From the NCBI GenBank assembly GCA_003427395.1, contig BFEA01000046.1:719499-783195 (forward strand): a DNA stretch of 63,697 bases, written 5' to 3'. This document shows, piece after piece, positions 3,384 to 61,100 of the stretch. The position numbers and the translations under genes were made by a program. Position 1 is the first letter of the stretch. Every line of letters starts with the position of its first letter. The notes under the pieces are model-generated. The model did not search any database. It saw only the letters and a list, made by a program, of their open reading frames with translations, and was not told the DNA's origin. This DNA is from Chara braunii. Lineage: Eukaryota; Plantae; Charophyceae.

Positions 3384-3384
<1 letters not shown>

Positions 3385-3449: not shown

Positions 3450-3451
<2 letters not shown>

Positions 3452-6961: not shown

Positions 6962-7005
6962 AACCCGAGTACGAGGCAGTTACATATACTCAGGCTACAC
7001 GTGGC

Positions 7006-7007
<2 letters not shown>

Positions 7008-7050
<43 letters not shown>
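7008..7050. repeat. (GA)n microsatellite
   Basis: Dinucleotide run. Confidence 0.9.
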
Positions 7051-7052
<2 letters not shown>

Positions 7053-9979: not shown

Positions 9980-10561
9980 ATGAGTACAGTGCAATCTATT
10001 CCAGTCAGTGAGACAGTGCTGACTAATCTCAACCGGATCTCGTGCAAGGAGGCTTTCCATTATCGTTATGTCAGCGCCATTGGCTTCAGACAGGGAGACT
10101 TGTCAATCTTCATTGTCCAGACCAGTTTTGCTGACGGTACTATCCATGACCTGAGGCGATACCTGAAGAAGGGCAAGGAGGCTCATGATCATTTCGATCC
10201 AATCTGGATCTCAGCCACTAAATACCTCGAGCAGAGAGAGAGGGAGCTCGATGAAAATGGCACTACGCTGATCCGCAACTTTGGGCCAAAGCTTTACACT
10301 GACTATCTCAGGCCTCCTGGTCCTTCCCCCCTTACAGATGGCACGAGTTGGTTTGATATGATCTGCTTGGCAAAGAGGTATATCTCTCCAGCAGTGATCG
10401 ACATTGAGGCACTGACTGAGCCCACCGAGTATCCTTACCTCAGACGAGAAGTCTTTTCAGTGGACGGACTGCCTACATTGTGGGAGGAGTTTTGCTCCAT
10501 GGTTAACTTCCGTGTCATGTACCTCGGATGGTCATGCTCAGAGCTTGCTGGCTTCAGATGA
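9980..10561 (+). CDS. LTR-encoded hypothetical protein, domain-X family (193 aa)
   Basis: ATG-initiated open frame near the 3' end of the solo LTR. Codon-aligned homolog at ~25300-25949 (-): MSTVQSIPVSE vs MSTVQSFPVSE, LIRNFGPKLYTD vs LIRNFGPKFYTD. Confidence 0.7.
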   Translation: MSTVQSIPVSETVLTNLNRISCKEAFHYRYVSAIGFRQGDLSIFIVQTSFADGTIHDLRRYLKKGKEAHDHFDPIWISATKYLEQRERELDENGTTLIRNFGPKLYTDYLRPPGPSPLTDGTSWFDMICLAKRYISPAVIDIEALTEPTEYPYLRREVFSVDGLPTLWEEFCSMVNFRVMYLGWSCSELAGFR

Positions 10562-11124
10562 CTCTTTGTCACGAGGCCTCAATTTCAGATTGTATGTGGG
10601 CTTGGGTCACAGCACCAGAGATTAACAATGAAAAGAGAAATTGAGAGAAACTGACCAGAGGAATGAATGAGGACTCTTGAGAGGTGTTGACCATGCTTGT
10701 TTATGTGTACTTTCTGATATTATTATAAGTTCTCATTCATCCTTCATTCATTTAATTTTGTCTTTGCTCAAGTCAGTCGGTCTTGCTTCTTGCTTTGCTC
10801 TTGCCTGATGATTGCTATCATGGATGATTCTGTCACAGTTCTCAAAATCGGATTGACATAATTGATGCATGCATATCACCCCATAATTTTATGGTTATTA
10901 TTTTTATAATTCTCTGCTGTTTCGAATCAAAATAAAAGATTCCTAAGACCGGGGACTCGCGAAGACCGCAATTGAAGGGTCTCGCTCGAAGCTGGACGCA
11001 CACAACAGAAAGGGATTTGCATTATTTTATTTATTTTATTTATTGCAATCATACAAAGAATCTTGCGTGACAGCCTATTGGCTTTCCGGTCGCCTGAAGC
11101 GGTCCGACTGAAAAAAGTGCGACA

Positions 11125-11876
11125 CCGCGGGCTGCCCCTCTTTTGGGGTTCCACCACGCGCCGCCCAGTCGAACAGGTCAGACCCCAGAATGATAAGTAA
11201 AGAGTCGGTCAGTCTAGACCACCAAGCTGCGCTCGGGGTTCGAAAATGAACCGTTAGCTACTCGCAGAACGACAAGAGGGGAAAATGAGTAAAGGAATCA
11301 GTAATAATAATAATAATAACAACAAAATAAGATAAGAAAAGAAATCATAACGCCGCCTCGGCCAGAGGTCACTAGATCGTCCCAAACAGAAGTGAGGGTC
11401 CAGATCTGTACGTAGATCTGACACTTGACTTCCTTTTTCTTTTTATCCCCATTTTCTTTTATTTTCCTTTCTTTCTTTCTTTACCCCTTTTCCATTCGAC
11501 TGTAAGAGCGGGTCAATGTACTTAACCCATAACCTGACAGAGGGGCACTCGGCGCGTAGTAGAAAAGACCACGCCGGTCTCTCTACTCTCGCGTCTCTGG
11601 GCGAGCCCGGCGGCTACCACGGCTACAGGCCGGTAGTGCTTTGCTGTACAGCAGGACGCCGAGTCTGCGTGGACCAAAGGAAAGTCCAGTGGCGCACCCC
11701 TTTTGTTGGGGAGGGCACCAACTGGACTTGTTCATAGTAGGGTACTATTCAGGTACACCAGGAGCGTCGCGTAGGCTTCGGGAGCAACCCAACGAGCCCC
11801 TGACGTTGAGCGAAAAGCAGTTACTGAGTAGGAATTTGGCACACAGAGGAGGGTCGGGACACCGCGCCCTCTTACA
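11125..11876 (-). repeat. 3' LTR of G1, first part
   Basis: Minus strand starts TGTAAGAGGGCGCGG; roughly 90% identical by eye to 31451-32204. Confidence 0.88.
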
Positions 11877-12279
11877 TAATACCAAACCCCCACCCAGCGT
11901 CCCCGCTGGGTCGAAACGCGTTCACAGTCGGTATAAAATAGCATGTACGGGCGGTACATTCATTCTTTTTCATTGCGACTCGTAGTGAAGTTTGTGTTAC
12001 AGTTTTTGCAGTAACTGACGTCCCATGTTTTCTTAGCGCTTCGCGTTTTCCTTCTTGCTGCTCGTAGCAATCCCATGCGATCCGCGCAAGTATTTTTCTC
12101 CTCCCTTCTTTTGCGGTTCGCTATTTTGATTTTCTGATCTACCCCACCACAGTAATTTTTCACTTCTCCTTAATAGCTAGTCCTCTTTTGTCCTAGCAAT
12201 ATCTTTCTTAGTCTCGATCCTTAGTACAACAACTTTCCATCTTTCTCGTTTTCTTCTCAGCCACCATCTCGTTCTCACA

Positions 12280-12642
12280 ATGCCTGAAGCACGTAGGGGA
12301 CAGGGAAGAGGGAGAGGTGGTAGAGGAGGGAAGGCGCGTGAAGAGCCGCCAGCTCGCGCACGGCGTGAATATAGTTTAGAGGAAGAGGAAGATGAGCCAA
12401 GGGGCTATGGCGCACACTCGAGGCCTTACCCCCGCCACTTACTGCCAGCGTGGTACGAAAGAACTCCATCCCCGAACAGGATGGAGTACTTTCAAAAGAA
12501 GTTCGAGGTGCGCTACGGCGCACCCAGCACTTCTTCCCCTCCATATACTCCCAGGGCCCCTACCTCTCCCACAGTAAGTAGAGCCCTAGTACCTGTTCCC
12601 CCACTTTGTCCCTTGTACTGCCCCCTTTTCTTCTCATGCTAG
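12280..12642 (+). CDS. Putative antisense ORF in the G1 3' region (RG-rich N-terminus, acidic tract)
   Basis: ATG ORF MPEARRGQGRGRGGRGG...EEEEDE..., ~400 bp from the 3' LTR start, opposite to gag-pol. Confidence 0.4.
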   Translation: MPEARRGQGRGRGGRGGKAREEPPARARREYSLEEEEDEPRGYGAHSRPYPRHLLPAWYERTPSPNRMEYFQKKFEVRYGAPSTSSPPYTPRAPTSPTVSRALVPVPPLCPLYCPLFFSC

Positions 12643-25949: not shown

Positions 25950-28900
25950 GAGTACGATAGTTGTTGCTCCTCTGACTTTCTCAGGTTTATTAAACTGCTT
26001 CTGTGACGTGGCTGTTTCGATTGTTACTCGTGCTCTGACAATTTACTGTGTCCAATTGTGACCAATCCCAAATCTGGTCCGTTTTTTCCAGTCTGTCTTT
26101 GTTTGATGTTTGCACAATTTCTCTTGGAGTCGGTGATTAGATCCTCTTACGGTTCACCAACAATAATTTTTCTTGCCTCTTCAACGGATCCTACAAATGA
26201 GAAGGTGCTGTGTAATTTTTCATTTGACCCGTGAATATAGCAAGTGTACTCAATGCGTGTCTGTTCCTTCACATGTGTCAAAGCGTGTTCCATCATGAGT
26301 TTTGTTTGATGGCAAAGGTCCTATGCTACTTTTTCTTCCCAGCCTTCGTCTCTGTCTCGGTGCAGTGAACAGGTCACTCTCAGTGTGCTCTCACTCCTTA
26401 TATCTCCACAAAGACCCATTGTACTAAAATGATATGATTGCCCTCACGTGTCAAGATACATGCTGGAACTGATATGAATGGTGATAGATTCTGATTGACA
26501 GAAATCTGCAACGCACCACCCTTCAGGCTGAGCGTCTCTAAGAAATATATTAACTGAGAGAGACCGGTCTGTCGTAGTTGTCAGAAAATGGTTAATTAAT
26601 TGAAGCTTGAATAAAATCACAAAGCGAGCGCCTCGTTTCGACTCGTCCTGTTGTTCTTAATGGTGAGTCAGGGCCATGCAGTCTGCCATTACGATCGTAG
26701 AACTGAAAGACGTACTCAATGTTTTCCCCTCCCTCTGAGTTTATTGATCGCACGTTCCCTTAGCATAGGAATTACTATGCAATGTCTCGAATAGCCTAGG
26801 CCTTCCAACTCTCATGTTTGTCCAGGTTAGTTGTACTTTTAACGTCTCTGCTTTTTTTTTTCCGTTTTCTTTATCCTCTTCAAAGTGGTGATCTTAGAGT
26901 TAAGAGGAAGAAGGCAAGATTTTACAGTCATGCAGGGTTCACCACATGCCACGCACACACAGATATTGTTGCAGACTCAGAAGTACCATGGTCATGTACA
27001 GCATAAGGTTCCACTAAACACGGTCTGTCTTATCGTTACTCAGAGGATCTCCGTCCCGACCACCTAGACAAACACCGTGGCAGGTACTCCTAGTCACTGT
27101 TAGTACGCATGCAGCCACTAAGTGCCATCTTTTACAGCTCCTGGACTCTGGCTTCTCAAACTCGAGGGTAGACTCGTAGGATTATGCCACTAAACAATTA
27201 CTGACAGCTTCCTCGACATGACAGATTCGCACTCACCCCTTTTCTTTCCCATTTTTCTCACAGGTCTCTTCCTGTCGATCCTTCGGGGTAGAATGCCGAA
27301 AACTCCGATACTCGGGCTTTTTACTGTCAATGCACTCTAGTAATCGCCAGTTCTAGATACAGTCGACAAACATGCAATAATTGGCTCATGCTGCGATTTG
27401 CATAGTGTCAGTGCCTTACCGAACTCACAGCAAGGACTGGTCCCTCACACCTGCAAAAAGCGGTACTTGGTATGGGGACTGATTCCTTAGAAATGACCAG
27501 TGGAGTCAGCGACACGACATTTACACAACGATGATCCCTCTTTCCTCAAAGCGTTAGTATTGGCATGAAAACGACCACACTAAGGATGCGTTCAAGCCGC
27601 ACCAAGCACTGTGTCACCCAGACCACAACATACTCAAACACAAAAGGGTACTTCAGTGATTCTGCAACGACCATTGTCAGGCTCCTTCACACATAGTAGT
27701 ACTATCCTAAGAGCTTTGTTTTTGGCCTTCCGCTCACGACTTGATCACTCTAAGCTCGTTCGCCCCATTCTTTATGTCATTACTGGATTCTCCTTTGGTC
27801 TTTGTTATCAGGCTAATAGATAAAGATTGGCGTTTTGACCCCACCACACGACCATGCTCAGTTCATTGAGTTAGGTCGCAGGGTTATTCTGTACTCAGTA
27901 CTGTAACCCCGAGCATGAGATTATTCTCGCTTGGGACTACGTGCGCAGAGGATGCATATGCTTTAGTCATAACCTATTAGCAGGATTCACGCTTAAAACA
28001 GGATGAGACCCTGTGCACATTTGTATGGGTTTCACCCGTGCTCGACACCCTCTTGGTATCGAACACAACTGATGTTCATATTTGGTTCATAAGAAGGTGG
28101 GGGGGTTAATGAATTCCTCAATTCATCTTCAGCACAAAGACCTGCTTGTGCAGCGCCGTATGTTTGCTTGCTGTCATGGAATATAGGAAGATTAACACAC
28201 TTGCATGTAGGCCAAGCAGAGCAAGATCATCTAATCACCATAAAAAAGGAACTTAGCAAGGAGGTAAGCCACTTTTCTGAGCACCCTCCTTTTCCCCATC
28301 AAACACATAGGGCATACAACGAACGAGCATCATCCTATTAAGCTCGCGGATCAAATTGCCAAAACAAAGCTCTTATTTATTCTATTTACAAGCGGCAACA
28401 ATACTTATTTAGTCATATCGAGGCATACCAGCGAGAAAGACTCACAGTCATGGTCAAGAAGTTCGGTTCCACCAGCCCATCAAAAGATGCTTTGCCTATT
28501 TTTCTCAGTATAATGATTAAGTAATAAAAAACAAAAAAGGAAAAGACAATACTCCGGGGAAGAGGTTCAGAACAGTACATTAATATCTCGCTCGTGAAGT
28601 CCCTTGTTACCCACCGATTATCACTCGAAGAGCTAAGTCTAGCCAATCATGTTTAACACACCTGAAAATTGGGCACTTGACCACTTTAACCCGCCAAATC
28701 AGACACGGGAATGCCTGGCCAATAGCCTCTGATGGAAACAGGACAAGAGGAGGGGGATGAAGCAGCCATTACTACTACCACAAAGGTGTCTCAAGAGAAT
28801 CAAACTCGAGTCCCAATATGTTTTCAAGGGAGAACTACGTTCTGATGCTCAACTCTCCGTTCCTTCCGAAGCTCTACTCTTACTTACGGCTCAACAAGAG

Positions 28901-30710
28901 ACTGTTACTCACGCACAAGCGAATAACACACCATCACCGATCGAAAGCACTCGGCTCAATCTCTCGAAAGGGAACCTCTGTCATTCATACTTGATACAGT
29001 CATCCACCCCCTCACCTTCGCCAACCACTATAGCAAGGGTTGCTAGAGTAGTGTCACATCTGGAAGAGGTAAAAATCATTATCACAAACTCGTACTGGAG
29101 ATGTCAACAAATTATTATTCGTACCTTAGGAGGATAGAATGTCGAGCCCCCTTTGCTACGTGTTGTGAAATGTAAATAGTATCGTCTTGTGACCAGTAAT
29201 TCACTGACACCGAATGTACAAAGAACCAACTCAATCATCGCCCAGAACCTGCATGTGGCTCCTAGCATCCAAAACTACAACTCTCTTCTTCTTTTGCCAC
29301 CCATGGAATGAGAAGTCGAATCAACCGGGTTACACACAAAACCATTGCCCTTTGGCGTAGATCGTCTGTCGCGACCAACCAAGTTGACCTCGTAGTACAG
29401 ACTCGCACGCCTCACTTGTCTCTTACACAACTTATTCTCACTAACTGGTCCACTGAAAACACTCGAGGTAGCGAGCGAACTCAGGCTCATGAAGGAGCTC
29501 CCGTAAGGAAAATCAAAGATCATTCATCGGAGGCAGATGGCATCGACCGAACTCAAGGCGTGGCTCAACTCACTCGTCTCCTCTGCCAATGACCCAGAAC
29601 TGAGCTGGCTCCCTCATGAGTACATGTGCATCCGACGGAAATCAAGTTGACGACACATGCAAGGAGGAGAGCGGGAAACGCTGATGATGTCACCCAATAC
29701 AGGCGACGCTCGTCTACATTCATGCTTGTCACACCCGCACTTATCTCTCCTTTCTTCGCCGTAGCGCGTGCTCGGGACCTCTCCTGATCGCTTGCTCTGA
29801 TGGTTAGTGACTGCAATCCTCGTACAAGCGAGGGGCTGTTCGATCTGTCTCCAAGACCTGTCTCCAAGACAGGGAAGCAGTTTGTGGTTGGCGTGAAGCA
29901 CGCAAAACAAGTCACGACCTCCACCATGCCCCGCAGGTTAACCTCTTTTCCTGGTCGACACCACTCACACTGCGCCTACAAAGTCTTTTCCCTCTCGTTC
30001 TTGATTGTCATTGTTGCAAGCGCGTCTGGTCTGTAACTACCCCATTTTCCTTAGTATTGCCCCCGCCAAGAATTAGCCTCTGGACCACTCTGTCTGGCTT
30101 GCCACACGCTGAAGTCAAGTTTGAAGTCAGCATTCCGAGCACACATACTGCGCTTGCCTCCCCCACGGTCTAGTTCTCCTTTCTTGAGTGTCGTCTGTCG
30201 TGTCCCTACTGGCCGCTGATCCTTTCAATCTGGTGAGAGCATAAAGTCCCCTAGCACAGAGCAAGGCTGTAGTTTCAAGCTGCGCACCGTTCGCAGGGTA
30301 ATGATGGCTATCCCACAGGGGCCAGGCTCGTGTTGAAAAGCCCAATGCCCACCATGGACACTCCATGCACTGCTGCGCTCCCTCGTACTCTTACCGCCAG
30401 CTAGACACCGCCCCCTCTGTCACACATGAACTACTTCGATCTCCCGTTGACCTCGGAGACTCTACTCTCTTACATGTGTCTCTCCCTTGTCTTTCATTTC
30501 AACCGTCTTTTTTTTTTTTGGTGTCGTAGTCGAGTGGTCTCACTCTCACACCTGCTATTTTTTCAAAACTGACCTCTGGGCCAACCTTTACCGACTCGGC
30601 TGACGGGCGTTCTCTACTCCACTACCCTAACTCATGCCAGGACTGGGTCTGGGCGTCACTTGCTTCGAACTCAGCCCCTGAGTCCCCCTGTTTTTCTAGT
30701 CATGCTCCGC

Positions 30711-31142
30711 CTAGCGGTGCAGGTCCTTGTGTCGCTGAGCGTTCGTTTTTAAGCCCCTCTCTACAGACTCGGCGGACGGGTGATTCCATCGCCATTGGTC
30801 CAGTCCATGCCAGGACAGAGTCGTGGCATCCAAATCGCTCTCCTCGCTTTCGGCCTCAGTGTCGCGATCTAGGTGTCGTTCTTCCCGATCCACCGTGTCC
30901 GTGGATGTCCCTTCGTCCAGGTACACGACAGTCACCCTCATCTCGTCCGTGACCCCGTCTCGTCTGCACCTCCTTTCTGCTCGATCTTTTGCCATTGTGA
31001 TCGCCATCTGTAGGCCTGGGTCCGCCCTCATCTCCTCCTCTTTTCCCCCTTCTACATTTATCCTCAGCTTCATCTCCCCCCTGCCGTAACTGTAGTCCAG
31101 CACAACTGTCACCGTAGGCCCATCTCCCGACATCCGCTCCAA
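30711..31142 (-). pseudogene. Family-Z ORF in the G1 5' LTR (5'-truncated)
   Basis: RINVEGGKEEEMR...AKDRAERRCRRDGVT...LSWHGLDQWR. Confidence 0.72.
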
Positions 31143-32204
31143 TCGACGAGTTGAAACTCCAAGATTAATAAAATAAAATTAATTCGGATGGTTCTGAAAA
31201 AAACGAGGGACTGAACTCTGACAATCAGGGCCCAAGTAGAGCTTAGCGTGCTACTGCCAACTACCAGTTCTCGTGAAAGCACGTAAAGCGGCCACAAGTC
31301 CGACCCATCAGTCCCATAATGGGATACCGAGGGGCACCCTCGTTTCTTCTAAACACGCCACCGGGCTAACCTTCACGGGTACCCGTGTCCGATGGCAAGG
31401 AGGGGGCTTATGACCTTCCGAGGGAGGTGATAAGCCTCCTACCAATGCGGCCGCGGGCTGCCCCTCTTTTGGGGTTCCACCGAGCGCCACCCAGTCGAAC
31501 AGGTCAGATCCCATGACGGTAAGTAAAAAGTCGCCCAGTCTAGACCACCAGGCTGCGCTCGGGGTTCGAAAATGAACCGTTAGTTACTCGGAGAACGACA
31601 AGAGGGGGAAATCAGTAAAGGAATCAATAATAATAATGATAATAACAACAAAATAAGAAAAGAAAAGAAATCATAACGCTGCAGCGGCCAGAGGTCACTA
31701 GATCGTCCCAAACAGAAGTGAGGGTCCAGATCTGTACGTAGATCTGACACTCGACTTCCGTTTTCTTCTTATCCCCATTTTCTTTTCTTTTTCTTTCTTT
31801 CTTTCTTTACCCCCTTTTGCGTTTGACTGTAACAACGGATCCATGTACCTAACCCATAACTTGACAGAGGGGCACTTGACACGCAGTAGAAAAGACAGCG
31901 TCGGTCCCTGTACTCTCGCGTCCCTGGGCGAGCCCGGCGGCTACCACGGCTACAGACCGGTAGTGCTTTGTTGTACAGCAGGGCGCCTAGCCTGCGTGGA
32001 CCAAAGGAAAGTCCAGTGGCGCACCCCTTTTGCTAGGGAGGGCACCAACTGGACCTGTTCATAGTAGGGTACTATTCAGGTACACCAGGAGCGTCGCGTA
32101 GGCTTCGGGAACAACCCGACGAGCCTCTGATGTTTGAGCGAAAAGCGGTTACTGAGTAGGAGCCTGACACACAGAGGAGGGTTGGGACACCGCGCCCTCC
32201 GACA

Positions 32205-33551: not shown

Positions 33552-33554
33552 TAA

Positions 33555-34068: not shown

Positions 34069-34150
34069 TAAGTATTCTAAGCAAAAACAGAACCTCTCAA
34101 TTCTCGACTGACGCGCTTATCCCAACCCAATCGCCAAGTCACTACTGCTA

Positions 34151-35295: not shown

Positions 35296-39899
<4,604 letters not shown>

Positions 39900-43149: not shown

Positions 43150-43490
43150 GGTTCCCAGCCACACATAACGGCTGCACTCATTTCGGGATTATGGCCTGAG
43201 GGCTGTGCTCGCATTCTTGGAGCTGGGTGTCTCGAGCGTATGGGAAGCTGTGGGACAACCGTTTAAAGGTCGTTATTGTTGGGAGGATTATTACAGGAAA
43301 GGTGAAAACTGCATTTCGTCTACTTAACGGTTCCCAGCAACACAACTGCTGCACTCATTTCGGGATTATGCCCGGAGGTCTGTGCTGGCATTCTTGGAGA
43401 TGGGTCTCTAGAGCGTATTGGTAGCTGTGGGACAACCGTTTTATGGTTATTTTTGTTGGGAAGATGATTACAGGAAAGGTGGAAAGACTA
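43150..43490. repeat. ~180-bp tandem duplication
   Basis: GGTTCCCAGC...CTGCACTCATTTCGGGATTATG...GCTGTGGGACAACCGTTT...TTACAGGAAAGGTG occurs twice. Confidence 0.8.
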
Positions 43491-45672: not shown

Positions 45673-45719
<47 letters not shown>

Positions 45720-45891
45720 GCGGTTTATCTTTCATGCTCTAGTGGAAGATTCAGTCTTGTTTTGCACATTTTGAGAGTGGTGCTGCGAGAGATAGAAAGA
45801 GAGAGGCACATTTTGAGAGTGGTGGTGCGAGCGCGCGCGCAAGAGAGAGAGAGAGGGGCGGCGAGTTTGCCGCGGCCCTCCCTGCAGGTTG

Positions 45892-45936
<45 letters not shown>

Positions 45937-48900: not shown

Positions 48901-49249
48901 TTAAAAAAAAAAAATCAAATAAATCAAATAAATCTGAAAAAAAGATATGTTATGAAGAAAAATTAATTAAACAAGATTTGCCTGAGCATTACATCCAAAT
49001 TCCTTACCAAATTTGAAATAACAATAAAATAAGGAGAAAAAATACTAATAATAAGAATAACAAAAAAAAAAAAGAGAATTAAATTTAGTGAGTGCACGAG
49101 CAAGTTTTCGACACCGTCGTCTTTGGCGATTTTTCATGTTTTTTTGGCATAGCCAAATGCCCTGAAAATTTACAGATGTGTACTTCACATAATACAAAAC
49201 CCACTAAAAAAGTTTCAAAGAATAAGAAAATTGTTTAGATCCCGAACAA

Positions 49250-49316
49250 CGGCCTAGCTCAGTTGGTTAGGCATGAAAGTGGCATTTGGAGGTTGTGGGT
49301 TCAAGCCCCATGACCG
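49250..49316 (+). other. tRNA-like segment with Pol III A and B boxes (SINE head or tRNA pseudogene)
   Basis: TAGCTCAGTTGG ... GGTTCAAGCCC; anticodon arm degenerate. Confidence 0.55.
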
Positions 49317-49919
49317 CCTGTGGCGCACTCAGCGCGAACGAACTGGGATAGTCCTCTGGATACTCCTGATCGGTATTAGTGGAATCTATGACCAACATCG
49401 GTGTGAGTGCGAGCGCGAGTGGGTTGTGTGTGGTGTGTGGGAGAGTGTTGGCCATAGCCACTGCTGCTACTCGATGAGGGGTGGGGGACGATGAGAAAGG
49501 GAGGCGCAGCTACTGGGAGGTCTCGGTCTTTGTGTTAGCCAGACCCCCACCGGCGGCCCCCTAAACATTAGGGGCAAGGGGCAACATGAAATCTCCCCTT
49601 CAATGTCCAAGAGGAAACTATGCTTGCAGGGGTTCCCTCTAGATAGCGTTAGGAGTAGGTAGTGAAAGGCAAAAACAGAAGTTGAGAGAAGAATATAGAA
49701 GAAAAAAAAAGAAATAAAGTGAAAACAAAAAGTAAAAAGTGAAAAAAGGCGAGCATGTTTTGACACCGCCACCTTTGGTGATTTTGATTCTTATGTGGCT
49801 GAGCCAAATGACGTCAAAATTTATAGGCATGTAACTCACAAAAAAAAAAAAAATCAGAAAAAGAAATATATTTTTAGTCCCCGAAATATTTTATTATTAT
49901 TATTATTATTTTTTATTAG

Positions 49920-49968
49920 AAATTCGGACCATTTCTCCATTTATGCATGTCATCCTTGTGCAGGGGCC

Positions 49969-50000
<32 letters not shown>

Positions 50001-50018
50001 ACGGATGTCCCGAAGGAC
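49920..50018 (-). ncRNA. U6: U6 snRNA full-length copy, probably a retroposed pseudogene
   Basis: GTCCTTCGGGACATCCGTTAAAATTGGAACGATACAGAGAAGATTAGCATGGCCCCTGCACAAGGATGACATGC...; A/AAT-rich tail; no recognisable upstream promoter. Confidence 0.93.
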
Positions 50019-50280
50019 CTGAAATAATTTTTGGCGGGGGATGAACGCCTTCAGGTTCGGACCTCGAACGGGAACCCGAACGCCTGTACGTGCAGAGGTC
50101 GGCCGGGGACCTCCGTACGTACAGGCTGGTGACCCTGACCATAATAGTGTAACACACCGATTTTAGGGAAAGTCAAATATGTAATATCGCTAATGCTCGG
50201 TAGTTATAGCTCTACGTGGAATGCAAATACTTGACAATTCTTTTTGCATTTGTGTTTTCTTTGTTTCTGTCGTCTTTTTG

Positions 50281-53200
50281 TACCGAGCGATGTATTCTTG
50301 AAGAAAATTGCTTACCTCGTCCGCCGTCTTTTTCTTAATGGCCTTAGCCTCTACGAATCCAGTGAGGTCATCGGGGGCGTTGATTATATACCTAAGCCCG
50401 CCTATCCCTTTCGACATAGTCACTAAGTCCACATGGACCTTCTCACCCAGAACGGTGGGAAGCGACTAGAGGCTCCTTGTATCGAACCGTCGCCCTTTTT
50501 TGGCAAGCCTCACACGTCGAGCAGTACTTCTCGACTTCCGTGTACTGCCCGTCCCACCAATAGAGCCTACGGACTTTGTCGAAGGTACCCTTTACCCCCC
50601 TATGGCCCCCGACGACCCCGTCGTGTAACTCTTTTATGACTGCCTTCCTCTCCTCCGGATCGCACAGTACCCTCACAGGAATCGCAAACTTGGTGGGTCT
50701 CTTAAAGAGATGGCCCCCTCGTAAGCAATTACCCAATGCTTTTTGCCGGATTCTCTCGGTCCCTGCTTCCCTACTGGCTAAATACAGTCCTATATTCCGG
50801 TACTTCCTGTCGTAAAGATTGGCGAGAAAGGTCCTCGGGGCCCCCTCCTCTTCCCGGCTGCTCCCTGCCAGTTGCGCCATATTAGCGGCGACCTTCATTA
50901 CCCCTTCTTTGGCCATCGTTGCTGCCTCCTCCTTAAGCCTCCGTAGGTCTTCCTCACAAATCGGAGCCGGGACAAACCGTCCGCCACCTGTTTTTTTGCC
51001 CCCGATACCCTTTCGACCCTATAATCGTATAGCCTAATATGTATCATCCATCGGGCGATGGTCGAGTCGGTCAGCGAGAAATCCTTTTGCAGGACCGCGG
51101 CCACTGCTGTTGGGTCCACCCTCATGAGAAATTGTCGCGCGTATATGTAATGGCGGAAGGCCTTTAGGCAATGCAGTACTCCCAACACTTCCTTTTTGAA
51201 CTGGCTATAATTCCGCTCGGCGGGGTTCAAGGTCCTACTCTCGAACTGCAACGGTCTCTCCTTCCCCTCTCCATCCTTTTGAGATAAGAGGCCCCCTACC
51301 GAGTAAGGCCCTGCGTTCATAAAAACTATGAACGGACGATGCTCTTCGTCCTCGAAGAACGGAACTCCTAGGATGTGCCCACCTTCGCGAAATTCCTCCT
51401 TTAGTGCTTCCATGGCCGCGGCCTGCTCCTCCCCCCAAATCCATCCTTCCGATTTCCTAAGCAGTCGTCTAAGGGGTTCTGCTTTCTCACCGTAGGCCTT
51501 TATAAAGATTCTCTAGTAGCCCACTACCCCTAGAAACTGCCTAACTTCTGTTATGGTCAGGTCATCAATTTCTCTAATTTCCTGGGATCGGGCCTCCGCC
51601 CATCCTTATCGCAGATGAAACCCAATATCTTGATGGACGACACGCCCCAACGACTCTTAGTTCCGCTCACCGTGAGATCAGCATCGTCCAACTTCACAAG
51701 GACATCCTTGACATCGCTCATGTGAACCGCTACAAACTTTCTCACCCCGGGAAAGACCTCCGTCTCATGTCGTTCAACCGGTCCTTTTATTGGGAAGTCA
51801 TCAAGAAGGACTTTCACTTTGTCAGGTATGAACTCCTTAAGGACCGCAATCATGGCCCCTTGGAACACCGCCGCGCCGTTTGTCCACCCCATCGGTACCA
51901 CCATCATTTGGACCAACGCTAGAGGCGTATGCATAGCGGTCATGTGCCTGCCTCGGTAGTCCAAGGGGATCTCATCATAGCCGGAGAAGAGATCGCAGAT
52001 TGAGTATATCGAGCGACCCGCCGATCCTTCCGCAAGTAAGTCTGCTTCAGGTATGGACCCCACGTCCCTTACAGTGACCGCGTTTGTGCTTTGGATGTTC
52101 TGAATCCACCTTAGTTTGTTGCTACCCCCCTTCCTCAGAAAGAACCATTTGTTGGAGTAGGCGCTTTCGCAAAGTTCCGCGACGAAAGTCCTGATTTTTT
52201 CCTTGATAAAGGTCACTATCTCCTCCTTCTCCTTTTGAGCATATTTCCACTGGGGTCTATCCTTCCAAGGCACGTGTGGAATCGTGTGGATTCGGGCCGG
52301 CTTAGCGTACCTTTGGTCGATTCTCCCTCTCTCCGAGTCATCGAAGGCCTTATCGCAGCCCCTTAGGGTCATAGCCACGTACTCCTTTTTTTCCTCCGTG
52401 AGATTCCCATCCCCTATATCCATCTTGGCCAACCTATCGGCCGTAATTCTTTGCCCCTCGGTCTCCTTCCTTTTTCGGATGATATCGGCGATCTCCTCCT
52501 CCGATATCGAAGTTTCCCCCGTTCTATCCCGGCTGACCGCGGCGGGTTTTAGTTTTTCCGCCACGGTTTTGTGCTTCTTGATTCCACCGGCTAGGGGGAT
52601 TCCTCCAAAAAAGACAGTCTCACACATCCACCGAACTCCTCCTCCTCGTCCTCCTTCTCATACCCTATCCCGTTGATCACAACTTTGCTCCCGATATCCT
52701 CGACCTCTAACTGGTCCCCCGGGGGTTCCTTATCCGTGTTCCTCTCATCTTGCGCGTCCACGGTCTTTAGGACCACCCAGATTCCGTCCGGACTTTGGAT
52801 TGAGAGGGTCTGACTCCCATCAGGCAAGTCAACAGTGGTAGCGTGAACCGCACTCAGCCAAGTCCTACCGAGGATCAACTCGGAGGAACACTCTTTCACC
52901 GAAATTATTGGGACTGAGCTTTCGATGCTTGCGACCTCTATCAAGGGGCTGTGACACACCCCTCAACTGGTTGAAGTTTGTTATCTGCCACGACCATCGA
53001 CATCGATATTTCCCTATCAATTTCCAAGCCCAGTTCCCGAGCGATGGAGTCCCTACATACCGTGGACTCGGACCCATTATCTACTAGAGCCCTCATCTTC
53101 TTCCCACTTACCACCGCTTGGAGTTGGCCGCTCCCTAATACATAGAACTTCTTGACTTCCTCCCCCGTGAAGAAATTAGCCGACAGTTCCTCCATGGTAA

Positions 53201-54900
53201 TTCGGGAGGACTGCACTCCTTCCTTGGGTGGACCATCTCGTGGTACCGTGGGTCCTCCGGCGAGCGGGATTCTTACTTTCCTTGTGATGCTTAAGAGTTA
53301 TTCCCTAGCGCTTTTGCTGGCCGCTAGGTATTCCAAAAGCGTGCACTGCGTAGGTTGAATCAAGGTTCTCCTAAGGGGGGCTACTGTGTCTACCTCATCC
53401 AAGGTACATTTCATTTCGAACTTTTTAGGCCCCCTCTTCTTAGGCGATTTGGGCGAAGTGGGCTCCTCCTTTTTTTCTTTTGCAACTTTGGCATTGGCCA
53501 TTAGTTGGTCGTTGTCGCCGCTCCTTCCTCCCGCATCTTCCGTCATGCTCTCTTGGCTTTTAGACGTCTCGGCCCCAACCTGTGTTCTCACCCTTAGGCA
53601 AGGCCTCTCTTCTTTAGGCTGGGTCTCAATGAACTTGATGAGGGACACCTGGGGTTCCCTAATGGATAGCCCCCCAGTTGACTCCGTCATTTGGATATGG
53701 GACGTGTTGGAGGTGCCCCCAATTTCAGGTTTCTTCCCCAGCCTCGCCTCCTGGAGGGCTATTCTCTTGTCCACATTCACCTTCATTGAGGGGTAGAAGG
53801 AGACCGCCTCTCCCCCATCCCCCCACACAACCCACTTGTTTTCATTTAGTTTTACCACCCCCAACCTTAAGGCCTCCGTGAGGTGAGGATAGTCCCTTTT
53901 GATGTGACTTTCCTCATTGCAGTAAACACACCCGCTTCGAGCTTGCGGGTTGTTGGGGCGCGGACCCCCTTGCGTCACTGCGGCAACAGGCACAGGAGGA
54001 GCCGGCGGCGGCGGCGCAGGCGGCGGAGCCCTGACCTCAGGTCGCGCTCTAGTGACTCTTACCTGAGGCGTGTCTCCCCACCTGCCATCCCTAGCGTCCT
54101 TCCAATGAGAATTCCCCCAATCAGGGCCTCGGTTTCCTCCTATCTCTCGGTCATTTCTCGAGCCTCCTTGGTTTTCTGGCTCGCTTCTCCATCCTGCTTG
54201 CCGTTCTCCCCATCGTGGACCAGGTGGACCAGGTGGACCAGGGGGTGGCCTGTCATTCCCCCTTGGGGCATCATTTCGTGTGTTGCGCATACTATGGAGC
54301 GCCATGTCCAGAGTTTCTTTCATGTATTCTCTCACGTCCACTCCTCCCCCGGTGCAGACCGCCTCCGTGACCTTTTCGAAATTGGTCGAGTCCCTTGGGG
54401 CCTTTTCAAGAACCTCCTTCCTCTTCTGCTCTGGTAGATGTAGCATAAACATTACGCACCTATCCACCTCCGACAACATCCCTCTATCTACTAGGGCTTG
54501 GGACAAGCGCTTGAACCGGCGGGTGAAGGCCACCAAGGTCTCCCGTTCCCCCCTCGCAACACGCCGCAAATCCTCCACCGTGGGGATCAAATCATCACAC
54601 GCGAAAGTCCGCAGTAGACTACTTTTGAACGTCCTCCACCGCCCATCCGTGTGGTAGATAGCCCTTATCGCAGGGTCCAATTCTGGGTCCGAGTGCTGGA
54701 TGAAGTGATCTATCGGATTCTATCCATTCTTTTTCGGAGAATCTCTTTCGGTAAGCATAACTTTCCCATTTCTCGACGAACCCCGTCACATTACGCCCGT
54801 CGAAGAAAAGTGCCTCTAGGCCTAGGTTGACGTCATAATAGGGGATTCGTCGGTCGTCGTATCGGCGGAAATAGGGCCCCTCCATAGCCCCGTCAATCAC
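50281..54900 (-). pseudogene. G2 gag-pol, frameshifted
   Basis: Gag 53298-54900 with CVYCNEESHIKRDY; PR RALVDNGSE; RT DLFSGY...PMGWTN...LLDD; RH ERPLQFESRTL; INT HDGVVGGH...CSTCEAC; INT core stops at EYIARY. Confidence 0.94.
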
Positions 54901-55159
54901 CGGGTCGTACGGCTTGTACCAAGAGGGATCCGACTCCTCAATCCGGGGTCAGGGTCTCGGCGGCCCCCAAGACTCTTCCCCGTACCGCCCTCTCTCATTT
55001 GGCCATTCCGTCTCCCAACATGCGGGTTCCAGACCCCTAAATGCTCTCCAGGCGTCCACCCCCGGACTTCTCCCCATTGCCTCTCCGGGAGCCTATGCGG
55101 CATCCGACTCCCTCTCGGCCCATCTCCTTGGTCTGCCGCTAGCTCCCGCCGACCTCTCA

Positions 55160-55700
55160 TCTCTTAGGTCCCTTCTATTCAGACCCCCTTCTTCTTCTCT
55201 CCTAGGCGGTCGTACCCTCGCCTATCTCTCGAAAACTCTAGTGCCTCCCCCATCCTTGCGTCCACTAGATCTGCCCATCGAGTTTCTACCGGAAGGCCCC
55301 TCGAGGCTTCAGCCACCCCCTCTCTCACCGGCACTTGCAGCTCTACCTCCCTATGCACTCGCACCTTCGTGCCAGCTCTTTGTTCCACCAAAGCTTGTCT
55401 CTCACCGGAGGCAGTTTCGGGCGCCCTTTCGGCCCACCTTCATGGTCGACTACCAGCTTCCGCCGCCCTCTCAGCTCTCAGGTCCCTTTTATCCTGGTCC
55501 CCTTCTTCTTCTCCCCTGGGCGGCCGATACCCTGACCTCTCTCTCGGGAATTCTGAAGCTTCTCCTACCCTCGCTTCGGCGTCCACTAGATCCGCCCACC
55601 GGGATTCTACTGGAAGGCCCCTTGAGGCTTCGGCCGCCCCCTCTCTCACTGGCACCCGTGGCTCTACCTCCGTATGCACTTGTACTTCCGAGCTAGCTCT
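55160..55700. repeat. Diverged tandem duplication just upstream of G2 gag
   Basis: EVELQVPVREGVAEASRGLPVETRWADLVDA vs EVEPRVPVREGAAEASRGLPVESRWADLVDA. Confidence 0.8.
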
Positions 55701-55913
55701 TTGACCCTCCAAGATTTGCCTTTCCCCTGAAGCCGTCTCTGGGCTCCTCTCGGCCTTGCCTATCGACTCGGTACCCTCGGTCATTTCTTCCGTCACCCTA
55801 CTTAGCCTAGCTCCTAACTCGGGGCTCTTCTCAACGCCCTATCTTAGTGCCGTTTCCGGTGGACGAGAGAGTCCTGCCTCCACCTCACTCTCCATGCACC
55901 CTATCGTTATCCT

Positions 55914-58900
55914 CTAGTCGCTCTCCTCGCTATCGTCACCTTCTTCCGAATTGTCTTCTTCCCCTGAGTCTCCCTTCCCCTCACTTGATTCCTGGATCTC
56001 ACTATCTTCTTTCGACTCCTCGCTGGTCACAGTCCACCAAACGTCCCTTACTCGCTTTTCTTCACTGGCTGCTAAGGCTAAGTTGGCGACTTCTAGGTCA
56101 GAAATCCCCCTCACCCCCTCTTGAGAGCACCGCCTGATCAGGTCCCTATCCACCTCTCCGGGTTGTCCTCCAAACAGGGGTTTGATGAATTCCCCAATTC
56201 GTGCCCACCACTCGAAGTCACTGTCCTCTCTCGATTCCCAACACTGGGTGAACAGTTTGTGCCCCCCTTCTTCGCCTAATGGGAATTTCTCTATCACCTT
56301 TCCCCTATTTCGGACCCTCCTCATGGTTGCATCGTCGGCGTGGAGTAGTCGGTAAGCCCAGGTTGGGATCTCCCAAGTTTTCCCGTGAGCCGCCCTTGGA
56401 ACTTCCGACCTTTCTCGGTGTTCCACTCTATCAACCACGCGTCCCTCGGCGCCGCACCCTCTCAATCTCCTTAGTCGGTCTAGGGCCTTTCGGGCGATGT
56501 CTAAGGGGTCCTTCCCTTCTGCTATTTCCGTCGCGAAGAAGCGTCAGTCGTCGGGAGACAGGAAGATCTCAGCCTTCCTAGTGCGGTTTCCACCTTTGGA
56601 GACCACCGAGAACCTCACTACCGTCTCTTGCCCGTAGATCTCGAAGAACTCAGTAGACACCACTCCTTCCCCTCTAACCCTAGGGAGGGTTACTCCATAC
56701 CTCTTTCCCGATTTCCAAGCTCTTTTTGAGGTACCAACAGGGTCCTCCCTGTCGTATCTAATCATCGGGGGCCTCACCTCATGCCTTCCAACCTCGCGGC
56801 GGCCTCTACCAGCGAGTCCTCACACCTAATGCGACCGATTTCTCCTTCCTCGCTCAGCGTGTGGTGCAAGGCCCCTTCGTACTCTCCCGTCCTATCCCAA
56901 AATCGAGTCTCTACAAGGTGTATCCTAGATGCAAGCGGGATTCCTAGATACTTAGCATCCTCTTCGAACCTTCTCTCCACTTCCAGCAGCGGCTCTCTCC
57001 AAGTCCTCTGGACCCTCCCTCCACTTGCACCTCTAATGTGGACCGAAAAGCTAGCTAGTGTGGTCCAGAACCTCCTTTTCCATAAGGCCAGCCGCCGCAC
57101 CTCCAGTAGAAATTCCTTCTCGGCACGGATCACTCGATCCTCTCCCAGCTCCGGGTTAAGTTTTGCACTTCCCTCGACCGTAATTTCGTTACCGTCCTCG
57201 CATGTCTCTAATTCCCAACGAATCCTATTGGAGACGAACGAAGCTCTCATAACCTCTCCTCACCGCGCGAGAAGATCTATCGTTAACTCATCGAGGATCG
57301 CGATCGCAGTTGTCTCCAGTAGCTTGATCCTAGCCAAGGACCCAAGCTTTGCCCTCCTTTCTTCCTCCCAACATAGAGTGAGGATCAGAGAACTTCTTCT
57401 CTTACCCTCTCCAACCCCACAAGCTCGCCAAGGTCAGGCTCGCTCATCCCCCAATTTCAGTCGACGACACGCAATCGCTATCCGAATTAGATCCGAGGGG
57501 TCCAATCCCGCTAACTCCCCTTCGTAGATCTTACCCAAGTATCTCCATGATATCTTCGATTCCCTCGCGTATCGACCCCACCCTTCAAAGGCGTAACCCA
57601 GCTCCTCTAGAGTCGACCAATTGTCTCTATAAGGATCCAGGAAACACCACGTTAGTAAGGTATGGAGGTCCCATCCCGTAAACCGGAACTGGCTTAGGAT
57701 GGAAATCCTTCTTTCTACCGCCCTCTTGACTGCCTCGGAGGGGTAGATCCGTTCAAAGATGAAACGGGGAACTCCCACCGGCTCACTAGAGATGAACCGA
57801 GGTATCTCCTCCCACCCCCCGTAGGTCACTCGATATTCTTCGTCGCACCCTTCGCGAGGCCTTACCTCCTCTACTAACTCTTCTAGTCGGTCTCTCACGG
57901 CTTGCGCGTCCCAAAGAGGGTCTTGCCCAGTCCGCAAGCTGCGCGCTATCTCTACAAGGCCCTCCTTCGAAAGGAATATTCGGGCCTTTCCAACTACTAC
58001 CCTCCCCTCGCTACACACCGCTAATCGCACGAACGCCTTCCCGCGCCGGATTTCCCCTTCTTCTCGCTGGAGGGTCCTAGTTGGTTTCGCCAATCTGGCT
58101 CTAGGTAGAGTGACACGGACAACTTCTCCGATGTCTTCAATCGGTTCTACTGACGCCCATAGAGTTCTCGGGATCCCCCTTATCATCGGCCTTTGAACCC
58201 CCGACGGTTCGCCACCGGTTCTTCCCCGAAGAAGCGGGCGTACAGGACGTCCGCTACTTTAGCTCTGATCTCCTCAAAATCTCTCAACCTCCCGAATATC
58301 ATAGACAATTCTCCTCTTGGAGGAACCCCCGTGTCCACGCACCGCGTATAGAGCCAGAACAAACCTCTAGCCCGCACCCCGGATTCTCGAGCCGCTCTAA
58401 GTACCGCTACCACTTTCTCCTCCGGGTCCCTTAAGAATGAATTGGTCAAGAACTAGGGTAGGTTCGCCTGGAGGACCCCAGACGCACGAGGGACTTCCCC
58501 AGGCTCGACGAAGGACACTAGAGTCCACGACTCGAAAGTCCCTTCCTCGTAATCAGCCAGCACCAAGTTATTTGCTACCAGCCTCGCGGATTCCTGGTAT
58601 TCCGTATGGGTCACTTGCGCAGTTACTAAGTCCCTCCACACTTCGGTCCACGCTTCCTCGTTGAGGAAAACCGTAGCCTGAATTTCTAGGAAACGACCGA
58701 GATCAGGCGACCCTCCTCTCTGCACTCCTTTCCAGGTGAGCCTGCGAGCTCGAACCCATACGTACGCACCTCCCCGGATGACCTCGCCTTTCTCAACGCT
58801 CATCCAGTAGGGCGTCACTCTCTGGTCCCCTGGAACCAAGACCTTCCCATTCTCACTGGCCTCTATCGATTCTACCACCCCGTTCTCGGTGAGCACGAAC

Positions 58901-61100
58901 CTCACCATCTACCGACGCCGTTCTAAAGACCCACTGGCGATACTTTTCGGGAGAGAGAGTGAAGGGTTTCTCCATGGACCCCAATCTCCTAAAAATACCC
59001 CAAAGCTTCCTGTATGGAGGGATACCCTGATCGATGCAATGCGTGTACAGCGTCCACAGGCCTCCAAAGGTTAACCCCAAACTCCTTCCCCTCTCTAGAA
59101 GCCTCACTATCTTTCCTTCGATCTTTCCTTGGAACAGGAAAGACGGCACCCTCATGGTTAATAGATAGCACGCCCTTGGAAGCTCCCCTTCCCCCGCGAA
59201 CCTCTCCCTCTCTACAGCCACAAACATAAGTTGCTCCCGAACCCTACTTATCCATTCCCCTTGCACTTCCCTCGCCTCTCGCAACAACTTACCCAGCCCA
59301 CCCCCTTGTCCTAGGACCAGGGGTACTACGACTTTCGCCCAAGCCTCCGGGCCAACGAAGATAACTGCGGCCACCTCCAGACTCCTCTCAACCCCTCAAC
59401 TCTCAACCTCTTTGGACTCTATCCACACGAACTCCCCACTGACCGTGGGCCTTCCCCCTTCTATCCTCCCCCAATCGGGCATACCCCCGTTCCTAGGGAT
59501 TAACCTACAGGTCTCACAGCCTTCTATGAAGGATTCGACGAAGCGTCCCGGTTCCTTATCATGGAACACCATTCACTCTAAAACATTTTTTGGGACACTC
59601 CGAGGAGCCTTTGGTAACCGTAATCTCGTCCGCCCTGGTGGTCCCGAGCTGACTCCCTAATGATCCCCGCGCGAATCCTACACGCTTTGATTCCTTACGG
59701 TACAGGGTTCTCCACGCAGTAGGTGTAGTACCAATGGAGCGACCTAACAGATAGCTGCTACCCTCTCTTCCGTACTTTGGATCGCACAACCTTCTCGTAC
59801 CGCTCCTCCTTCCCGCTCACCCTCCGGAAAACGAAAGACGGGAATACGGCCTGTATGCACCCTGTGGCACGAGGGTATTCCTCGTCTCGAGCGCAAGTCA
59901 CCCTCACCTCGATTAGTGGGCAGTAGCGAAGGGGCTCCGCCTCAAAAATCTGCCTCAAAATCGGACCCGCTCGAGTTTCCCAATGATGCGCACGGTACCA
60001 ACCTAGGACCAAGTGAGTGACGTAATCTACCCAAGCCTCCCTACTCAGATAGAATGTTCCTTCCGCACGGATCACCGTTCATCCAGGCCTCTTCCCGCTC
60101 GGGGGCCCGTTCTGGTACCACCTGTCCCCTTCCCAAGTTCCTACCGCGAATCGAGTCCAAAGGAAAACCCCCTCCTCTAGTTCTAACCCTCTCTCGCGAC
60201 CGGCCAGATACCTCTCGGTGCGATGGTCTAGGGGGACGCTAAAGCACTCCCTGTCCTTGCTTAAATCTGCTCTCTCTATTCGTACCCCCTCCTCTTCAGT
60301 ACCTTCTACGATCCTAACCATCCCCTTGGACTATCTCCTCTATGATTTGAACCAGCGCTCTCCACCCGTCCGAACCGTCAAGGAAGGCTTCCGGAATAGT
60401 AGGAATAGGCCTCTCCCCTCGCAAATACGTCCGATACCCCAACGAGTAGAAGTAATTAATCTCGTAGGCCCCAAGCAGTTCCCTCTCGAGCCGCGAGTGG
60501 CCGACCGCCTCCTCCCAGCTATCTAAAAAACCTGCCTCTCTATCTGCACCTTTTTCCACGTACAAAGCTATGTCGAAGTCGCCAGTCCACTAGTAGAAAT
60601 TGTAGCACCACACGTCCATCCCGTCTTGACTACCCACACTAATCCCCGAAGGTTCAAACTCCAGAGCCCTCAGACTCATGGATTGACCGTTCTCACTACT
60701 CTCTCCACGATCCCTATTAGCACTTTCCAATCGTCCGACCCGTCGAGATAAGCGTCCGGGATTACCGGCGCCGGACGACCACCCCTGGGGTAGGTTTGGT
60801 AACCTAAGGAGAAAAAGTACTTAAACCCGTAACTCCTTAACTCCCCCCTTGAACCACGAGAGTGGCCTATCGCCTCTTCCCATCCACAAAGGAAATCCTC
60901 CCCTTGATCTAGCCCTTCCTCTACGTAGACACCCACATCAAAGTCACCCGTCCATAGTCGAAAAGTGTCTTTGATCAAAAGGAATCTGTAAGTTCCACTA
61001 CCTTTTGGCCACTCGAGAGACCACCTCTAACCCGCAAGGAGAAGATGCCTGTGAGCTCAGAAGGATCAAATGGACCAGAGAAGGAACGCTGTCTCACTCA
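55914..61100 (-). pseudogene. G2 pre-gag polycistronic accessory ORF array (about 8 cistrons: 2 domain-X, about 5 family-Y, 1 other)
   Basis: Reconstructed cistrons: ~61100-60676, 60679-60314, 60321-~59560, 59572-58853, 58908-58183, 58186-57434, 57250-56774, 56765-55914. ATGA overlaps at 60676-60679 and 58183-58186. Confidence 0.8.

Follow-up and report, generated by a model that had tools for sequence, protein, structure and literature searches.

The stretch of Chara braunii DNA analysed here (63,697 nucleotides of contig BFEA01000046.1, positions 719,499 to 783,195; hereafter the window) is transposon-rich eukaryotic DNA with two decayed Ty3/Gypsy elements, the AT-rich G1 and the GC-rich G2, both on the minus strand. 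Their long terminal repeats (LTRs) and the leaders that precede gag carry a protein module of about 130 amino acids, referred to here as X, which occurs eight times: twice in LTRs, four times in tandem in the G1 leader and twice in tandem in the G2 leader. The copies are listed below, with their matches to a hidden Markov model (HMM) built from the six LTR and G1 copies, in which the breaks of broken copies were read through as the letter X.

9980-10561, plus strand: intact LTR X open reading frame (ORF) of 193 aa, from ORF and translation, HMM 172.9 bits, in the nested solo LTR 'T'
25949-25402, minus strand: LTR X ORF broken by two frame changes, in the G1 5′ LTR
24443-24108, minus strand: G1 leader unit U1, one in-frame stop, C-terminus truncated, HMM 2.7e-34
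23980-23565, minus strand: G1 leader unit U2, in four pieces, HMM 1.7e-16, 7.3e-8, 1.1e-12 and 2e-5, stop TGA at 23562-23564
23565-23074, minus strand: G1 leader unit U3, ATG at 23563-23565, one internal stop, HMM 2.4e-28 and 7e-27
23089-22664, minus strand: G1 leader unit U4, the most diverged, three internal stops, HMM 1.2e-15, 2.2e-9 and 3e-5
61097-60679, minus strand: G2 leader unit Ua, whose core is one open piece of 116 aa (61026-60679)
60721-60317, minus strand: G2 leader unit Ub, the tandem twin of Ua, whose core is an open piece of 91 aa (60589-60317)

Reading of the three minus-strand frames gives units of ~130-150 aa each, and a search of the window, including the 5.6 kb that separate the G2 units from gag, found no further copy. 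The LTR ORF begins with its own conserved ATG (MSTVQ...) and comprises the X domain (residues ~1-135) followed by a conserved C-terminal tail of ~55 aa. Its broken counterpart is spread over three frames (25949-25803, 25803-25732 and 25722-25402), the pieces of which match the HMM at 7.6e-12, 1.7e-8 and 1.2e-18, and the surrounding region shares 72% nucleotide identity with 9941-11124. A preliminary description of this DNA had counted at least seven copies and quoted peptides from them: all of the peptides are present at or near the places given for them and the module is indeed repeated, but one G1 unit had been missed, and the positions given as ~23060, 23565 and 24118 belong to real units of which they mark the ends. 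The placement of X in LTRs and pre-gag leaders was correct, both LTR copies lying within a giant LTR of the G1 family.

The copies share a pattern that opens with an N-terminal helix (LxxLNxI) and the strands PYExV.Y, VYVLTYYF and YDVRIYV. Next come a long helix (CW..A....E..LE..GK), strand four and, beyond a PxPPxP loop, a closing helix starting (D/N)G..W. Intact single-unit X ORFs of 121-173 aa are found in one Chara locus and among metagenome-assembly proteins. Three Chara loci outside the window (L003, L004 and L005) contain elements 72-74% identical to G1, and the G1-like element of L003 carries four X units in the same order as in the window. Elsewhere in the genome of Chara braunii, Gypsy elements of a third family have X directly upstream of gag.

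Pairwise BLASTP joins the LTR ORF to U1 (E 4e-9) and the G2 twins to each other (E 2e-37, 57% identity), and links neither the G1 nor the LTR copies to G2. The HMM of LTR and G1 copies only, searched against 2044 six-frame pieces, recovers both Ua (E 2.5e-6, 24.4 bits) and Ub (E 1.4e-4, 18.7 bits), with the best non-member at E 0.73; the reciprocal model, built from G2 only, finds U1 at 4.7e-4, and the best scores in 20 shuffled databases were 9.6 and 7.9 bits. Profile-profile comparison with hhalign, run on group alignments enlarged with outside sequences, gave E 1.9e-17 over 127 columns for the LTR type against the leader type, E 2.1e-9 over 86 columns for the leader type against G2, and E 5.6e-4 for the LTR type against G2, with all three pairs aligned in one register. 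No nucleotide similarity was found between the G1 and G2 X units, and their GC contents differ (0.36-0.44 in G1, 0.51-0.53 in G2), so the similarity is at the protein level, where identity between G1 and G2 is ~20% for X versus 43-60% for pol. X is thereby shown to be homologous in all three families, G1, G2 and the third.

The substitution patterns point to a coding sequence. Between the LTR ORF and its L004 copy, the ratio of non-synonymous to synonymous substitution rates (dN/dS) is 0.09 over 193 codons; six other pairs of LTR ORFs give ratios of the corresponding uncorrected proportions (pN/pS) of 0.24-0.32, and the G2 twins give 0.33. Pooled G1 leader units compared with their L003 orthologues yield a dN/dS of 0.22 over 429 codons, to be set beside gag (0.25-0.28) and protease (pN/pS 0.12) in this pair of elements. 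Judged by these ratios, X is, at least historically, a protein-coding sequence, on which purifying selection has acted with roughly the strength seen for gag.

One alternative, that the resemblance is due to chance or that the units are a repeated non-coding leader acting as an RNA or DNA signal, would draw on the loose, hand-aligned pattern with which X was first noticed and on the stops contained in all leader copies of the window. We regard it as already refuted: the reciprocal HMM and hhalign results are significant with shuffle controls, dN/dS lies at 0.09-0.3, intact ORFs exist elsewhere, the predicted structure is confident, and the G1 and G2 units have no nucleotide similarity. The preliminary description had proposed an old, selected and repeatedly duplicated accessory factor without an assigned domain, alike at the protein level between the AT-rich G1 and the GC-rich G2. 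That view withstood each of the refuting conditions named along with it, and is borne out by profile-profile scores that are significant among LTR, G1-leader and G2-leader copies, by dN/dS values well below 1 for the LTR ORF and the G1 leader units, by the GC contents, and by searches of Pfam, PDB sequences and Foldseek libraries, which gave no significant match to a known domain.

The elements in which X resides have the following parts.

24806-32204, minus strand: G1 5′ LTR, ~7.4 kb, starting TGTCGGAGG and ending GTGCGACA, which holds the X ORF and a second conserved ORF (E-ORF)
2485-11124, plus strand: solo LTR 'T', 8.6 kb, termini TGTCG...CGACA, with the 4-bp target-site duplication CCGC
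11125-11876, resuming at 2484-2170 past 'T', minus strand: start of the G1 3′ LTR, matching the first part of the 5′ LTR (32199-31141) at 91-92% identity
24784-24801, minus strand: G1 primer-binding site (PBS) TGGCACCGTTGCCGGGGA, 4 nt past the LTR end (...GTGCGACA at 24806), conserved in L003
62883-62900, minus strand: G2 PBS TGGCGTCGTTGCCGGGGA, with 2 mismatches to the G1 site
16349-22559, minus strand: decayed G1 coding body with a pre-gag ORF, gag, protease, reverse transcriptase (RT), RNase H and integrase
50193-54719, minus strand: G2 coding body with gag, protease region, RT, RNase H and an integrase truncated near 50190

Both G1 and G2 are Ty3/Gypsy LTR retrotransposons, as judged from the TG...CA termini and target-site duplication of the solo LTR 'T', a PBS starting with TGG in each element, and genes in the order gag, protease, RT, RNase H, integrase. 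The G1 5′ LTR is colinear with 'T' (2485-11124 matching 32204-24806 on the opposite strand from end to end) and with the copies in L003, L004 and L005. 'T' belongs to a related subfamily and is nested in the G1 3′ LTR: in a three-way alignment its CCGC target site is uninterrupted at 31451-31454, and the first ~1.07 kb of the LTR unit recurs downstream of the G1 integrase. The LTR 3′ end, ...AGAAAAAGTGCGACA, is common to five copies, followed in two full-length elements by (G/A)AAA and the PBS and, in three solo or terminal LTR copies, by unrelated sequence in which the PBS is absent. A shorter unit, 9941-11124 with its counterpart 25989-24806, was considered as a complete 1.2-kb LTR and was ruled out by the target-site duplication and the colinearity of the 7.4-8.6 kb unit. 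Both LTR copies of X thus lie inside the giant LTR, within its last 1.2 kb and ~1.1 kb from the LTR 3′ end, upstream of the PBS. With an internal region of ~12.9 kb, the whole G1 element would be about 28 kb long. In L005, the final ~1.1 kb of the LTR occurs twice in direct orientation (7044-8167 and 10001-10998), 3 kb apart; both copies carry an X ORF and finish at the canonical LTR 3′ end.

The pair of primer-binding sites has a chance expectation of 0.04 matches per window, and each site would differ at a single position from the sequence complementary to the plant tRNA-Asp 3′ end. An exact search, and searches that allowed 3 mismatches to the putative ancestral form TGGCGCCGTTGCCGGGGA, detected no PBS in L003, L004 or L005; alignment does reveal a diverged one in L003. 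The G2 X units begin 1.8 kb after the PBS and end 5.6 kb before gag, and it is the position of this PBS that places them in the internal pre-gag region.

The coding bodies allow the two families to be compared. The G1 body contains a Pfam aspartyl protease match; down to 20004 (pre-gag ORF, gag and part of the protease) it forms one 74% nucleotide alignment with L003, and its RT and RNase H pieces match the L003 element at the protein level. In G2, gag is a 473-aa open piece (54719-53301) and RT occupies 52657-51560, with Pfam matches to RVT_1 (3.3e-11) and, weakly, Retrotrans_gag. RNase H and integrase pieces were recognised from their order and their similarity to one another; in both elements the integrase is truncated or decayed. 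Between G1 and G2, identity in RT, RNase H and integrase is 43-60%, so that the two are distinct families yet not remote, and not 'very different', as they had first been called. Given this identity and the shared type of PBS, X was most simply inherited from a common Gypsy ancestor rather than acquired twice.

The ends of the leader units bear on how X would be expressed. Of 13 leader-type units, taken from the window, from Chara loci and from proteins of metagenome assemblies, 12 stop no more than ~15 residues past the domain end, most of them within 4; these include the third family and both G2 units (Ua stops 1 aa past the domain end, Ub exactly at it), and the LTR type and U4 have longer tails. 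At the U2/U3 junction, the stop TGA overlaps the next ATG (ATGA), an arrangement kept in the 74%-identical L003. In the window the reading frame that follows U4 ends in a stop (TAG, ~22562-22564) 2 nt before the ATG of the pre-gag ORF at 22559, and the L003 orthologue of this junction has an overlapping TAATG; in two more copies the spacers measure 8 and 1 nt. Neighbouring X units lie in different frames. With stops just past the domain and, in many cases, an ATG that overlaps the stop or comes soon after it, the arrangement suggests that the leader X units are separate, translationally coupled cistrons upstream of gag.

The units might instead be N-terminal domains of a long Gag or pre-Gag polyprotein, with the stops reflecting decay or being bypassed by programmed readthrough or frameshifting. 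The X units are sense-oriented and directly upstream of gag in three families, the window copies are all decayed, and in the Chara annotation pieces of this kind are joined into long gene models. We nevertheless consider this arrangement unlikely, if still to be reckoned with: the stops fall at a homologous place, 0-15 residues past the domain, in nearly all units of three families and on independent contigs; adjacent units differ in frame; stop and ATG overlap or lie close together at several junctions in a manner conserved between 74%-identical copies; and the LTR copy, ~1.1 kb upstream of the PBS, has a conserved initiator methionine. As to that copy, a TATA-like box (10715-10727) and an AATAAA (10931-10936), both conserved, follow 155 and 370 bp past the X ORF stop at 10561; as a motif-based guess, the LTR X ORF would lie in U3 and hence at the 3′ end of the transcript.

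The X domain family appears to be undescribed so far, and no relative was detected beyond these elements. An exhaustive HMMER profile search of 1.84 billion proteins returned only seven cluster representatives and no land-plant protein among the matches; the three named representatives are transposon-derived chimeric gene models of Chara braunii and the others come from ENA assemblies, two of whose proteins were traced to short contigs of one metagenome assembly. A homologue search with the LTR ORF found nothing, and one with the family alignment added a single metagenome sequence. Pfam gave no match to X in 14 X-bearing sequences (six pieces searched at E ≤ 0.05 and eight at E ≤ 10), the lone stray match, to a helix-turn-helix model at 0.023, falling within a linker; the X profile had no match to PDB sequences at E ≤ 10. 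A literature search found no publication on accessory ORFs of Chara transposons.

AlphaFold2 modelling of a 131-aa unit (P0004) from a 19-row alignment gave a mean predicted local distance difference test score (pLDDT) of 81.7 and a predicted template-modelling score (pTM) of 0.75, with a helix at residues 3-16, strands at 22-32, 35-44 and 49-57, a helix at 64-86, a strand at 90-100 and a helix at 119-129. The model of the LTR ORF has the same core order, with a short additional N-terminal strand and the fourth strand split in two; its residues 1-110 have block-mean pLDDT values of 70-94 and confidence is low from ~110 onwards. The predicted alpha-beta3-alpha-beta-alpha fold of X is thus a confident one.

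Foldseek searches of PDB (with both models) and of a viral library returned no match at E ≤ 0.001. The best values were E 0.03 in PDB and 0.0028 among the viral structures, with template-modelling (TM) scores of 0.2-0.39 and root-mean-square deviations often above 10 Å, and the weak top matches are spread among GNAT acetyltransferases, PD-(D/E)XK-like proteins and EEP nucleases. One could read X as a degenerate PD-(D/E)XK nuclease-like or GNAT-like fold, whether pseudo-enzyme or divergent enzyme, in that the order of helix, three strands, helix and strand fits the PD-(D/E)XK core and that viral proteins of the PD-(D/E)XK-like type (E 0.014-0.09) and GNAT proteins (E 0.04-0.6) are among these weak matches. 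Such an origin is very improbable, however, in view of the poor structural scores, the lack of any Pfam match even at E 10, and conserved positions (one D, Y, W, A and G, with prolines) that form neither a D...(D/E)xK pattern nor an acetyl-CoA motif nor any other motif of the weak Foldseek matches.

The X units have a near-neutral isoelectric point and no hydrophobic segment, properties suggestive of neither a nucleic-acid chaperone nor a membrane protein. Taken together, we think it probable that X is a lineage-restricted, soluble alpha/beta accessory protein of ~130 aa, distinct from Gag, which Chara Ty3/Gypsy elements encode in short separate cistrons. One tailed copy would sit in the LTR and two to four tandem copies between a tRNA-Asp-like PBS and gag. 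The leader units would be translated successively from the genomic RNA through termination-reinitiation or leaky scanning, and the U3-located copy would serve as a 3′-proximal accessory ORF of the transcript. The near-neutral charge, the conserved PxPPxP loop and the lack of catalytic-looking invariant residues lead us to propose that the protein acts through protein-protein contacts and helps the element's own replication or persistence; that X is a protein-binding accessory factor of the element is our best guess, held with moderate to low confidence.

A special case of such an accessory protein would be a silencing suppressor or another host counter-defence factor. Conservation restricted to transposable elements, divergence faster than that of pol (~20% versus 43-60% identity) and repeated duplication follow a pattern general to host-parasite interfaces, and might be taken to point in this direction; the pairwise values, on the other hand, show purifying selection only, and Pfam, PDB-sequence and Foldseek searches brought up no similarity to known suppressors. 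We rate this role as improbable. A bolder proposal, which strikes us as a long shot, is that X represents a new fold and an accessory gene whose expression would come both from a polycistronic leader of caulimovirus type and from the U3 of the longest LTRs yet described, and which would serve anti-silencing or intercellular spread in a multicellular alga. If it were true, the Chara elements would be a missing link toward the multi-gene, virus-like genomes of plant-lineage reverse-transcribing elements.

Several points weigh against the reading of X as a separately encoded accessory protein. Stops or frame changes occur in or around every leader copy of the window, so that the unit boundaries come from decayed copies; U3 and U4 overlap by ~40 nt and have no tight junction, and one metagenome contig has no ATG in the 42 nt after the stop. 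Protein-guided local alignments bias dN/dS somewhat downwards, and dS is saturated for distant pairs. Both AlphaFold alignments mix all groups and provide no independent evidence that the G2 copies fold alike. The assignment of U3, R and U5 depends on short motifs only, expression of X is deduced from selection alone, and the statement on function is the weakest part.

Accessory genes encoded in LTRs are familiar from retroviruses, as in the sag gene of mouse mammary tumour virus (MMTV), which lies in U3, and nef of human immunodeficiency virus (HIV), which overlaps it. The LTR copy of X resembles these in being an ORF within the LTR upstream of a putative TATA box, its placement in U3 being motif-based; it differs in that there is no homology, the element has no env and the host is an alga. 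Caulimoviruses produce a polycistronic pregenomic RNA whose closely spaced or overlapping ORFs are translated by reinitiation. Like them, the Chara elements are reverse-transcribing elements of the streptophyte lineage that appear to carry several short ORFs in succession ahead of the capsid gene, where stop and start codons overlap or are separated by only a few nucleotides; unlike those of caulimoviruses, the Chara cistrons are paralogues of one another, and a homologue of the transactivator was neither sought nor seen.

The nearest known counterparts of X are the extra ORFs that precede gag in giant Gypsy elements of plants. Among plant LTR retrotransposons, Ogre elements have LTRs of 1.9-6.5 kb, an internal region of 11-13 kb and one or two extra ORFs (PMC6431247), and the rice elements Retrosat2, RIRE3 and RIRE8 combine LTRs of more than 3.2 kb with a fast-evolving ORF0, the Ka of which in Retrosat2 is three times that of ORF1 (PMC3485330). 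Additional ORFs (aORFs) upstream of gag-pol have also been noted (PMC7264820). The feature by which aORFs are recognised, sense coding between PBS and gag in most copies of a family, is found in G1 and G2 of the window and in L003; in the third family X adjoins gag. X is similar to the extra ORFs of Ogre and Retrosat2 in being sense coding between the 5′ LTR and gag of very large elements whose LTRs are unusually long and in evolving much faster than pol. It is dissimilar in comprising two to four tandem, separately terminated small cistrons and an LTR copy instead of one long ORF, in having no land-plant relative (a separation based on the HMMER profile search alone), and in its host, a charophyte alga; the Chara LTRs, at 7.4 and 8.6 kb, also exceed the range quoted for Ogre. 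In where it lies and how it evolves, X behaves like the known extra ORFs upstream of gag; it is not demonstrably of their family. In bdelloid rotifers, additional ORFs are reported to be shared between diverse LTR retrotransposon families (PMC5408684). The Chara case is comparable, with one accessory module in several retroelement families of one host lineage, but host and proteins differ, and the sharing in Chara is most simply explained by common descent and not by capture.

Extra genes in LTR retrotransposons are raw material for the accessory functions of retroviruses and pararetroviruses, and almost none has a known role. X is unusually tractable in this respect, being small, with a confident predicted fold, gag-like purifying selection and copies in no fewer than three Gypsy families of the same genome. 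Cistrons set so close together in a row would imply non-canonical translation on a eukaryotic mRNA, and LTRs of 7-9 kb with two conserved ORFs stretch the known architecture of LTR elements. X offers a clean, testable new accessory module with an unusual arrangement of genes, alongside LTRs of record length, although extra ORFs without an explanation are common in such elements. Of practical use, an X profile would help to mask the chimeric gene models of 38-95 kb, composed of X pieces and unrelated reverse transcriptases, in the Chara braunii annotation. Three of these models were followed here, spliced models having entered the analysis as parts only.

L003 10001-105401: gene model GBG64722.1, spanning 95 kb
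L004 10001-48321: gene model GBG80537.1, spanning 38 kb
L005 10001-68272: gene model GBG69355.1, spanning 58 kb

All three link pieces of X or of the E-ORF with reverse transcriptase pieces of other elements and look like annotation chimeras of transposon fragments; GBG80537.1 splices the E-ORF to the X ORF.

Besides X, the LTRs and leaders contain other conserved ORFs.

31178-30714, minus strand: E-ORF in the G1 5′ LTR, ~1-1.5 kb from the LTR 5′ end
4080-4463 and 6584-6958, plus strand: E-ORF, duplicated in the solo LTR 'T'
L004 9974-10522 and L003 43113-43666: E-ORF in other loci
22383-22559, minus strand: conserved pre-gag ORF following the G1 X units, with 60% identity between copies
L003 49710-49964, plus strand, and L003 2249-2446, minus strand: counterpart of the pre-gag ORF or segment similar to it by eye

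The E-ORF has no Pfam match and, with a dN/dS of 0.14 against its L004 copy, is under purifying selection. It was examined as a distant copy of X, for which an hhalign P of 0.045 in a plausible register was judged insufficient; it may be a very distant relative. In the third family, the X units are preceded by a segment that by eye resembles the pre-gag ORF, a hint that the modules are ordered differently from family to family. From the G2 X units to gag, the 5.6 kb at 54700-60300 (minus strand) contain many open stretches without a Pfam match and have protein-level repeats of their own, two pieces (58856-59395 and 58186-58452) sharing 43% over 51 aa, and a 320-bp tandem duplication lies at 55110-55755; these stretches may be further undescribed pre-gag modules.

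The remaining features of the window are as follows.

62074-62303: assembly gap of 230 N in the G2 leader, between the PBS and the X units
102-1727: satellite array of ~91-bp units, 15.7 copies, at the left window end
63270-63697: satellite array of ~91-bp units, 4.7 copies, at the right window end
49918-50018, minus strand: full-length U6 small nuclear RNA gene, 98.9 bits
15237-15557, plus strand: open stretch of 107 aa matching Proton_antipo_M (NADH dehydrogenase/antiporter membrane subunit family), E 2.7e-13

The assembly gap could hide a further X unit. The left satellite array truncates the G1 3′ LTR, and the right one lies upstream of the G2 PBS, with the interior of the G2 LTR as its probable location. 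The U6 gene is situated ~170 bp past the point at which the G2 integrase breaks off. The 107-aa stretch, which looks like an organelle-derived fragment of nad2 or ndhB, sits in the 4.4 kb that separate the G1 integrase from the G1 3′ LTR.

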